A stretch of DNA of 63,007 bases, counting the filler, from Octopus bimaculoides (Eukaryota), in the NCBI RefSeq assembly GCF_001194135.2. It is 7 parts of 7 records of this genome, joined end to end, with 100 filler letters (N's around TTAATTAATTAA, not from the genome) between each part and the next. Parts side by side here need not be neighbours in the genome. Positions count along the whole stretch, not along the records: positions 46,418 to 50,560 come from NC_068983.1; positions 50,661 to 57,636 come from NC_069003.1; 5 more parts are not named here. One strand, written 5' to 3'. Below, one piece after another: positions 49,111 to 51,440 of this stretch. How positions within the stretch are numbered: position 1 is the stretch's first letter; each line of letters starts with the position of its first letter. The notes beneath the pieces were generated by a model. That model was not told the origin of the DNA, did no database searches, and saw only the letters and a list, made by a program, of their open reading frames with translations. Position numbers and translations under genes: made by a program.

Positions 49111-50793
49111 CAAAATGAATAATGTTGAAACTGTAAAACTAGGTGTACATGGGCTAGGTCTATCTCTTCAGAAATGCATTAAAAATACGAAAATTTAAAA
49201 TAAGCTCTTTTATAAGATTAACTGCTTTCCCCTTCTATGTCGTCTTCAATTTTCCTGGCAAGCTTCCTGCTGTCAATGCACCTTTGGTATTTTATCCAAA
49301 ATAATTGTCTTCATTCCTGTATGTATTCCTGACATTAGAGGAGAAATAATTCTTGAGAACATGGAATACTTATTTTAATTTTCATTTACAAAATAATTAA
49401 AATAATAACTCAGCAGGCTTATAAACTGGAAATTAAGGGTAAGATAAAAACAAACCTCTTCTCTACATACAATAACATTCTTATCATATGAAATATGAAT
49501 TCATACCATCTGTAATTCATAGCTTACAAAAACAGCGCAGTTAGAAATATGCGGGCTTTCATCTAATTGGAAAGTATAGTTTTTCACATTAAAGCACATT
49601 TTCAGTAACTGATTTTGAAAGTCATCAGACGTCTTCTCTTTGCTGCTTCACAATGTTGTTTGATAATATAATCATTTCATAATTCCATGCTACTTTGTTT
49701 CCCTGCATTCTAGAGGCAATTGGTTTGACAACAGGCAGAATTAGTTCCTCCAGTGCTGTGTGTAGTTTTCACTTTTCTATTAGTGAAAGAGACACATCAC
49801 ACGAAGCAAACAATGTATTTTTATATTCACAGCCAGTTCCATTTTTGTTTTTTCTTGAAATTTGTCGTGAAAGTACTCCTTGCCTCTTCTTTGAAAATAT
49901 TCAATAGGTTAGTTAATGTTTTCTGTACGAGTCTATTTCTGAATATTAACGAAGTTTGACTGGCTTCATGCTTTCATAGAAGAACGTTTCATAATACAAA
50001 ACACACTGTAGCTTATCTACAATTCCATGTTTGTGTGACTATAACGAAAGAACCACGTACTCATTACCATATTTATGAATGTTGTATTTTGAAACTTCAG
50101 CTAATAAGTTAGCTTTTTATCCTAGAAAATCTATAACTGTGTTTCCACTGATGTTTCATTTTCATGTGCTTCTGGTTTTTAACTATAAATTCAAACTTAA
50201 CAAGATATATATATATATCTTTATTTTATCTTTCATATTTTACTTGTTTCAGTCATTAATCTGACGGCATGTTAGAGCTCTACCTTAAAGGGATCAGTCG
50301 AGCAAATCGCCTATAGTACTGTTTTTCATTCTAAGCTTGACACTTTGTTGGCTGTTTTGACGAACAGCTGGATGACGACGACGCCAATGAACCAACCCTA
50401 GTTTTCTAGTCCTAGCAGGTGCCAAATACAAACATGAGCGCGCACACACACACGCACACAAACACACGCACACACACACACACAAACCCACACACACTCA
50501 CACCAACACACACACACACACACTCGCACACATACATCTATAGACATATAAATATATGTGNNNNNNNNNNNNNNNNNNNNNNNNNNNNNNNNNNNNNNNN
50601 NNNNTTAATTAATTAANNNNNNNNNNNNNNNNNNNNNNNNNNNNNNNNNNNNNNNNNNNNGTTACTGTTAATACTTCATTTAGAGAATTAACATTGCTTG
50701 TTTTCACCTTTTCAATATCAGTGAAGAATGTCACTGGAAAAGAAGATATAAGATTTTGCCAGGTTTTTCTCTCTCACCAAGGTCATCAGCTGT

Positions 50794-50838
50794 CGAACGC
50801 CGAAGAAGGGAAATAACCCTGAAATCCGGATACGTTCG
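50794..50838 (+). ncRNA. Hammerhead ribozyme fold with U4C core variant at the tip of a long hairpin
   Basis: Stem I CGAACG/CGTTCG, core CCGAAGA (50800-50806), stem II AGGG-AAATAA-CCCT, GAAA (50821-50824), palindrome ATCCGGAT, triplet ATA (site after 50832). Confidence 0.7.
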
Positions 50839-51440
50839 TGCTGCTGGTCGTGGTGAGAGGGATAACTCCCTTGGCAAACAGGACACAGTCGTGTGTCGAT
50901 AAGCCAGCTGGAGGAGATGTCCTCCTGGGGCTAAAAGCAACAGTAACATCCACCCCTAGGGGTCAGCCACACTTAAGTGGCAATATACTACACTTTATAT
51001 ATATATATATATATGAATATATGAATATATATATGAATATATATGTATGTATGTATATGTGTCTGCATGTGTGTGAGAGAGCCAGTAGATAAATACGTGG
51101 TAATATGCGTACATACATATGTAAGTATATCTCTGTGTGTGCTTGTACGTATTTACGTATCTTATATCTGTTATATTAAATTGTTTTTATCATAAATGTT
51201 TCACTGCTGCGTTTGCTGTGTGGTTTTGTTTTGTTTTGTTTTCATTTTCAACTCTATTAATTGATTTGAGTTGTTTGGAGATCAAAGCAACGACATAATG
51301 AACAAAGATAGATGAACTTCACACTACATGGGGCGAGGTGGTCTGGAGTGGTGGATACTGAAACAGGGATGGGTGGTGGGGGTGACATGTAAGGGAAGAA
51401 GAACGCAAACCAGTGTCGCAGTAAGGACAAAATGAAAGTG

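Follow-up and report, generated by a model that had tools for sequence, protein, structure and literature searches.

The window considered here is a stretch of 63,007 nucleotides (nt, filler included) of Octopus bimaculoides DNA joined from seven parts of the genome, and the sequence analysed is its NC_069003.1 part, which covers positions 50661-57636 (~7 kb). Near the beginning of this part lies an element (50755-50990) that is predicted to fold, as RNA, into an imperfect hairpin rod with a hammerhead ribozyme motif at its tip, followed on the 3' side by four small hairpins. The element is set apart by its composition, with a guanine plus cytosine (GC) content of 0.51 (0.513) against 0.28-0.29 in each flank, and the GC-rich island comes to an end at ~50985-50990. 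The part around it has the character of cephalopod nuclear DNA, being AT-rich and dense in microsatellites of the types (TA)n, (TG)n and (CA)n, and the 94 nt that it holds upstream of the element have a GC content of 0.29 and no domain match. The sequence features that a first-pass annotation had listed for this island were all found again, each in its place, and they are collected in Table 1.

The hammerhead topology (50794-50838) is complete. Three helices meet at the junction, as first annotated, and helix I is open-ended, which makes the motif type I; the same arrangement was recovered with a descriptor of our own and in the register of the Rfam family Hammerhead_HH9. The type-I descriptor gave one match in the 7-kb part, which puts C3 at 50800 and A17 at 50832 and departs from the core by U4C alone, so that 11 of the 12 constrained positions of the conserved core agree with the consensus and position 4 is a C (50801). 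The cleavage triplet is AUA, and the register places the predicted cleavage between 50832 and 50833, which is where it had been put before. In canonical animal type-I hammerheads, helix I has 6 bp and helix II has 4 bp, the loops of these two helices interact, and helix III has 1-2 bp closed by a palindromic loop of 2-4 nt (PMC4209133). The octopus motif has all of these parts: a helix I of 6 bp, a UGU/U loop 1, a helix II of 4 bp capped by 6 unpaired nt, and a helix III of 2 bp with a CCGG loop. This geometry corrects the previous assignment to the minimal subtype, given that in minimal hammerheads (min-HHR) helix II is long and A9 is followed by an additional base (PMC4209133).

The extent to which such a motif could arise by chance was estimated with the descriptor in 20 Mb of Markov-random sequence, where matches with up to one mismatch occurred at 0.03-0.06 per 57.7 kb, counting both strands, and perfect matches did not occur. 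As defined by the descriptor, the bare motif is only moderately improbable, and this chance rate corresponds to thousands of matches in a genome of a few gigabases. The descriptor omits the palindromic helix III, the placement of the 3/1 loop, the combination of 4 bp in helix II with 6 nt in its loop, and the rod into which helix I extends; when these features are added, a chance origin becomes, by our own estimate, very unlikely. From the random-sequence rate, we estimate at ~1e-6 the probability that a hairpin already in place would have a loop of this appearance. For this reason the motif is treated as derived from a hammerhead, which is considered highly likely.

Two positions of the motif deviate from the consensus. 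One is U4C, and the other is the A50807-U50820 pair, which replaces the conserved G10.1-C11.1 and is still Watson-Crick. The latter was overlooked by the first-pass annotation, which named U4C alone and described it as unusual; there is a natural precedent for this substitution in a viroid hammerhead, with an in vitro activity that is considerably lower and an infectivity that is still permitted (Perreault et al. 2011, PMC3088659). In the canonical form, C11.1 and G12 make up a CpG, and in the octopus motif the 10.1-11.1 pair is altered on both sides. A plausible path is a C-to-U decay for which a later change of G to A compensated, and this would mean that helix II stayed paired. Among the 4227 Rfam families, the best structured match of the 58-nt core is Hammerhead_HH9 (12.5 bits, E = 0.71), in the same register as that of the descriptor. 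A match to mir-4529 in Rfam was discarded as spurious. On the minus strand there is a perfect 5' box, CTGATGA (reverse complement of 50784-50790), which was taken as a coincidence because neither an adequate helix II nor a GAAA follows it.

The structure predicted for the whole island is more stable than expected by chance. The minimum free energy (MFE) fold of 50750-50990 has -95.2 kcal/mol (z = -4.94), that of the rod alone (50755-50878) has -55.7 kcal/mol (z = -6.15), and the four 3' hairpins (50882-50981) reach z = -2.62; in each case none of 200 shuffled sequences folded as well. The first description as a rod of ~45 bp holds in that there is a long imperfect duplex, but this has 36 bp, within arms of 45-46 nt. 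The minus strand folds nearly as well as the plus strand (z = -4.39). The rod has four G.U pairs when read as plus-strand RNA and none when read as minus-strand RNA, an asymmetry that, in the predicted fold, mildly favours a plus-strand RNA. Taken as a unit of ~236 nt and permuted, the element also folds as a circle, with -92 kcal/mol.

Table 1. Features of the octopus element and of its surroundings. Positions count along the whole window.
Feature	Position	Strand	Remarks
Imperfect hairpin rod with hammerhead junction at its tip	50755-50878	+	36 bp, five helices
Rod helix, 9 bp	50755-50763/50870-50878	+	MFE fold
Rod helix, 12 bp	50768-50779/50851-50862	+	MFE fold
Rod helix, 5 bp	50781-50785/50845-50849	+	MFE fold
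Rod helix, 4 bp	50787-50790/50840-50843	+	MFE fold
Loop 1, UGU opposite U	50791-50793 opposite 50839	+	3-nt/1-nt internal loop, 6 bp from the core
Helix I, 5' strand CGAACG	50794-50799	+	6 bp with CGTTCG at 50833-50838
Core box CCGAAGA (C3-C4-G5-A6-A7-G8-A9)	50800-50806	+	consensus CUGANGA; C4 at 50801 deviates
Helix II, AGGG/CCCU	50807-50810/50817-50820	+	4 bp; closing pair A10.1-U11.1
Loop 2, AAAUAA, 6 nt	inside helix II, 50807-50820	+	CAAAUA in Schistosoma N79
Core G12-A13-A14	50821-50823	+	descriptor and Rfam register
Helix III palindrome AUCCGGAU	50824-50831	+	A15.1-U16.1 and U-A pairs, CCGG tetraloop
A17/C1.1, predicted self-cleavage site 50832/50833	50832-50833	+	from the hammerhead register
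Helix I, 3' strand CGTTCG	50833-50838	+	MFE fold
Hairpin GACACA/UGUGUC	50882-50897	+	MFE fold; region covered by the second copy (P0001)
Hairpin AGCC/GGCU around GGAGGA/UCCUCC	50902-50932	+	MFE fold; covered by P0001
Palindrome ACCCCUAGGGGU, 4-bp hairpin	50952-50963	+	MFE fold
Hairpin GCCAC/GUGGC	50966-50981	+	MFE fold
(TA)n/(TATG)n/(TG)n microsatellite	50996-51075		adjoins the 3' end of the element; outside the RNA element
SINE-like repeat, ~420 bp	54836-55254	+	three occurrences, 65-84% identity
SINE-like repeat	56358-56770	-	
SINE-like repeat	51565-51651	-	

The island had been described as an orphan, which can no longer be maintained, given that a second, non-identical copy in Octopus bimaculoides came to light through a protein entry. 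The 72-amino-acid open reading frame (ORF) on the minus strand of the element (50949-50731), when used as a probe, matched one protein, UniRef A0A0L8IHK6 (A0A0L8IHK6_OCTBM; here P0001), which is a 54-amino-acid "uncharacterized protein" of the same species, and an exhaustive HMMER search with the same ORF again returned this protein alone. In tblastn, P0001 runs along frame -1 at 50949-50863 with 28 of 29 residues identical, and it then changes to another minus-strand frame at 50866-50789, with 22 of 26 identical. To judge from these alignments, P0001 is the translated minus strand of a related, non-identical copy of the repeat, and its gene model, placed on a repeat copy, is very probably spurious; the existence of the entry hints that some copy may be transcribed. 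Relative to the element studied here, the P0001 copy implies an insertion of 1 nt near 50863-50866, another sequence of ~6 nt in the rod at 50845-50850, and the substitution of G for A at 50796, with which helix I is still paired, as G.U. The residues NVSGFQGYFPSSA, which extend over the 3' strand of helix I, helix III, helix II and the core, are unchanged. Mapping of the codons fixes C3, G5, A6, G8, A9, U11.1, G12, A14, A15.1, A17 and C1.1 in P0001, with U11.1 common to both copies, and positions 4, 7, 10.1, 13 and 16.1, each of them third in its codon, are unreadable from the protein.

A concatenated six-frame query against the protein databases gave no further copy. The control ORF, taken from an abundant SINE-like repeat (SINE, short interspersed nuclear element), also matched just one protein, and the single match is therefore uninformative on copy number: hardly any non-coding DNA of octopus is visible through protein databases. 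Exact-pattern scans of the JGI metagenomes (two patterns) and of IMG/VR, which are collections without cephalopod DNA, gave no match.

Retrozymes of animals are units of 170-400 nt that are highly self-paired and carry canonical type-I hammerheads (PMC7229834); they are found in head-to-tail tandem arrays, and solo monomers, regarded as offspring that can no longer move, are also common and dispersed. Penelope-like elements have terminal repeats to which retrozymes are related, and probably mobilise them (bioRxiv 10.64898/2026.07.22.740005). The octopus unit of ~236 nt is inside this size range, and its high self-pairing, canonical type-I geometry and palindromic, dimer-favouring helix III make the retrozyme the known category that fits it best, as the first-pass annotation had proposed; the further suggestion that it is domesticated found nothing in its support. 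It is regarded as likely, with moderate confidence, that 50755-50990 (~236 nt) is a solo unit of a non-coding, multi-copy hammerhead retroelement of the animal retrozyme type, which lacks long terminal repeats (non-LTR) and presumably derives from Penelope-like elements. Cephalopods have hammerheads as well as Penelope-like elements, with 235 loci of Rfam Hammerhead_1 in the genome of the giant squid (PMC6962438) and active Penelope-like elements in Octopus vulgaris (PMC13282606).

The cycle of active families, as it can be drawn from the literature, would start with the transcription of tandem units. Helix III would be too short to support a lone hammerhead, and two of them would pair through the palindromic helix III (here AUCCGGAU), in line with the short palindromic helix III and dimeric action described for animal type-I hammerheads (PMC4209133, PMC7229834). 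Each hammerhead would then cut 3' of position 17 (here 50832/50833), freeing an RNA of unit length whose ends are a 5'-OH and a 2',3'-cyclic phosphate, which the tRNA ligase RtcB would close into a highly self-paired circular RNA, and the reverse transcriptase of a Penelope-like element would copy this circle back into the genome. At the octopus locus there is a single unit, and therefore no monomer can be released from it. When two copies are folded together, a double hammerhead with an intermolecular helix III of 8 bp is predicted, at -43.1 kcal/mol versus 2 x -19.1 (-38.2) kcal/mol for two monomers. In the predicted MFE fold of the monomer, C3-C4-G5 is paired with the C-G-G of loop 3, and C4 adds 2.2 kcal/mol to this inactive fold relative to U4. 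Because of U4C, of the A-U pair in place of G10.1-C11.1 and of the pairing of C3-C4-G5 in the stablest fold, the ribozyme of this copy is predicted to be probably crippled in catalysis, and weakly active at best. The locus is best seen as a non-mobile descendant copy that would be weakly active or inactive.

Several observations weigh against the assignment to the retrozymes. No tandem was found, given that a repeat search, TRF and a sensitive blastn returned no second unit in the 7-kb part, of which 94 nt lie to the left of the element. Further copies are demonstrated for n = 1, at the protein level alone. The GC content of 0.513 is borderline, above the <45-50% reported for animal retrozymes, and the MFE fold exceeds the catalytically competent one in stability by 7.8 kcal/mol. 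The score of 12.5 bits for Hammerhead_HH9 is far below the gathering score of 52, and Rfam at E <= 10 on 256 nt and on 6976 nt gave neither a hammerhead nor any other family that could be believed; the sub-threshold score is attributed to the deviations U4C and A10.1-U11.1.

Another explanation is that an autonomous Penelope-like element left a piece of its terminal repeat (pLTR) here, with the hammerhead as its processing ribozyme and with the ORF for reverse transcriptase and endonuclease lying to the left of the edge of the part or deleted. The pLTRs carry type-I hammerheads, and most of these motifs are present as single truncated copies (PMC4209133), retrozymes and pLTRs are related in sequence (bioRxiv 10.64898/2026.07.22.740005), and active Penelope-like elements occur in octopus (PMC13282606). 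The microsatellite that adjoins the 3' end of the element (50996-51075) may be its insertion target, and some Penelope-like elements have an insertion bias toward (TA)n (PMC8557442), to which this position would conform; in a genome so rich in (TA)n the adjacency is weak evidence, for this origin as for that from a retrozyme. The geometry of the motif is canonical, unlike the min-HHR of animal Penelope-like elements, and neither the six-frame Pfam search of 50661-53561 nor that of 10 ORFs gave a signal of reverse transcriptase or GIY-YIG, with the 94 nt upstream being AT-rich (GC 0.29) and devoid of a domain match. An origin as a pLTR fragment is considered unlikely.

The motif could also be a look-alike, formed by chance in an unrelated inverted repeat, such as a miniature inverted-repeat transposable element (MITE), a foldback element or a small-RNA hairpin, with a loop that resembles a hammerhead. 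The rate of random one-mismatch matches, which scales to thousands per octopus-sized genome, the good folding of the minus strand (z = -4.39), the Rfam score of just 12.5 bits and the two conserved positions that are off consensus are all compatible with this explanation. It is opposed by the features outside the descriptor, which together all fit a canonical animal hammerhead (PMC4209133), by the chance of ~1e-6 estimated for a hairpin tip of this kind, and by the G.U pairs of the rod, which favour the plus strand. In addition, the amino acids over the hammerhead segment of P0001 are all conserved, in contrast to the rod with its 6-nt replacement and its indel. A chance resemblance is considered quite unlikely.

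The deviations of the core may instead be a fixed property of a family. That there is an octopus retrozyme family whose hammerhead has become fixed for a compensated core with U4C and A10.1-U11.1, and self-cleaves as a dimer, is decidedly improbable; if this were true, ~236-nt circular RNAs from this family would be present in cephalopod tissues, and the unchanged hammerhead segment and the shared U11.1 would reflect selection and not a recent duplication. A related proposal is that of a functional, possibly domesticated family of self-cleaving non-coding RNAs, in which both deviations are fixed and tolerated and the ribozyme acts in dimeric form or with the help of host factors. The viroid U4C hammerhead is active enough in vivo to allow infectivity (PMC3088659), U11.1 is common to the P0001 copy, both sides of the 10.1-11.1 pair have changed with helix II preserved, and no difference between the two copies can be detected in the hammerhead segment. 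Against this, two copies are known in total, of which P0001 cannot show position 4, the U4C substitution considerably lowers activity in vitro (PMC3088659), and the inactive fold gains 2.2 kcal/mol of stability from C4. A functional family of this kind is very improbable.

A coding exon was rejected, given that no Pfam family was found in six frames of 50661-53561 or in 10 ORFs and that there is no coding potential. A SINE transcribed by RNA polymerase III was considered improbable, given that there is a weak B-box-like GTTCGTGCT at 50834-50842 with neither an A box nor a T-run terminator; ARAGORN found no tRNA, hence no sign of a tRNA-type SINE head in the element.

The surroundings of the element had been described as free of ORFs and of recognisable transposable elements, and it is true that no coding transposable element is seen; what does not hold is the absence of repeats, given that SINE-like repeats occur in the part and that a (TA)n tract adjoins the element. 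Inside the SINE-like repeat, 55000-55060 is a run of (TA)n(TG)n. Presumably it resembles the abundant tRNA-derived SINEs of octopus, and ARAGORN and Rfam gave no tRNA match for it. It matches an unrelated ENA metagenome contig (L001, ERZ15185476) with 88% identity over 417 nt. Another GC-rich island (51930-52240, plus strand, GC ~0.49), after which trinucleotides of the type (GTA/GCA)n are repeated at 52236-52275, has the look of a further repeat of the retroposon type; it occurs once in the 7-kb part, and it has no match in Pfam or Rfam. Rfam matches to mir-297, mir-466, mir-1277 and mir-3149 fall on (TA)n/(TG)n tracts, including 52795-52890, 53078-53150 and 54990-55066, and microRNA genes on these microsatellites were rejected as artefacts of low complexity, with E values at the threshold and scores far below the gathering scores. 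Assembly gaps (runs of N) are present at 53562-54295 and, after a poly-C tract, at 57273-57286, and distances that span either of them are unreliable.

As it stands, the octopus element looks like an ordinary relic of a known class of selfish elements, and most likely it belongs to a known kind and is not a new class of RNA. Its practical use is mainly in the annotation of repeats, where the UniProt entry A0A0L8IHK6 is probably a translated repeat. The literature searched contains no description of cephalopod retrozymes, the closest reports being those of the Hammerhead_1 loci of the giant squid and of the Penelope-like elements of octopus; if the assignment were confirmed at the family level, it would extend the hammerhead-bearing retrozymes to the cephalopods. 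The element could also serve as a natural test of how far a canonical animal hammerhead tolerates U4C together with an A-U pair at 10.1-11.1.

Comparison with known hammerheads and retroelements places the octopus element at different distances from each. The viroid with the U4C hammerhead is an RNA replicon that is a plant pathogen, and its hammerhead has an architecture that differs from that of the octopus motif. It shares with the octopus motif the same core substitution (PMC3088659) and lacks the context of a genomic retroelement. The min-HHR of the pLTRs of Penelope-like elements (Cervera and de la Pena 2014, PMC4209133) are, like the octopus motif, of type I and associated with retroelements, with a palindromic helix III, a low intrinsic activity, an association with microsatellite targets and an occurrence mostly as single dispersed copies. 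They differ in that helix II has 6-8 bp and is preceded by an unpaired base between positions 9 and 10.1, whereas in octopus it has 4 bp and no bulge, and in that G10.1-C11.1 is strongly conserved and helix I is short and poorly defined, whereas octopus has an A-U pair and a helix I of 6 bp that runs into the rod.

The canonical type-I hammerheads, represented by Sm-alpha/Sm1 of Schistosoma, satellite 2 of the newt and HHR_Amex of the axolotl (Rfam clan CL00010), share with the octopus motif an open helix I, the GAAA box, an H at position 17, an A-rich loop 2 and a palindromic tetraloop in helix III. The likeness extends to the details in Schistosoma Sm1/N79 (sequence from PMC12550524), given that helix I has 6 bp and helix II has 4 bp in both, loop 1 is UAC/U in N79 and UGU/U in octopus (3/1 nt in both), and loop 2 is CAAAUA and AAAUAA, respectively, each of 6 nt with AAAUA in common. 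The octopus motif departs from the canonical type I by C4, by the A-U pair at 10.1-11.1, by the AUA triplet and by the low Rfam score, and its helix I continues as a rod with arms of ~45 nt whereas that of the canonical type I ends shortly past loop 1. With respect to the animal non-LTR retrozymes (Cervera and de la Pena 2020, PMC7229834), the octopus unit differs in that there is no tandem at the locus, the GC content is 0.51 and the core of the ribozyme is mutated; like them, it is small, non-coding and self-paired, it carries a type-I hammerhead and it resides in a host lineage with Penelope-like elements; a second copy of it is implied by P0001.

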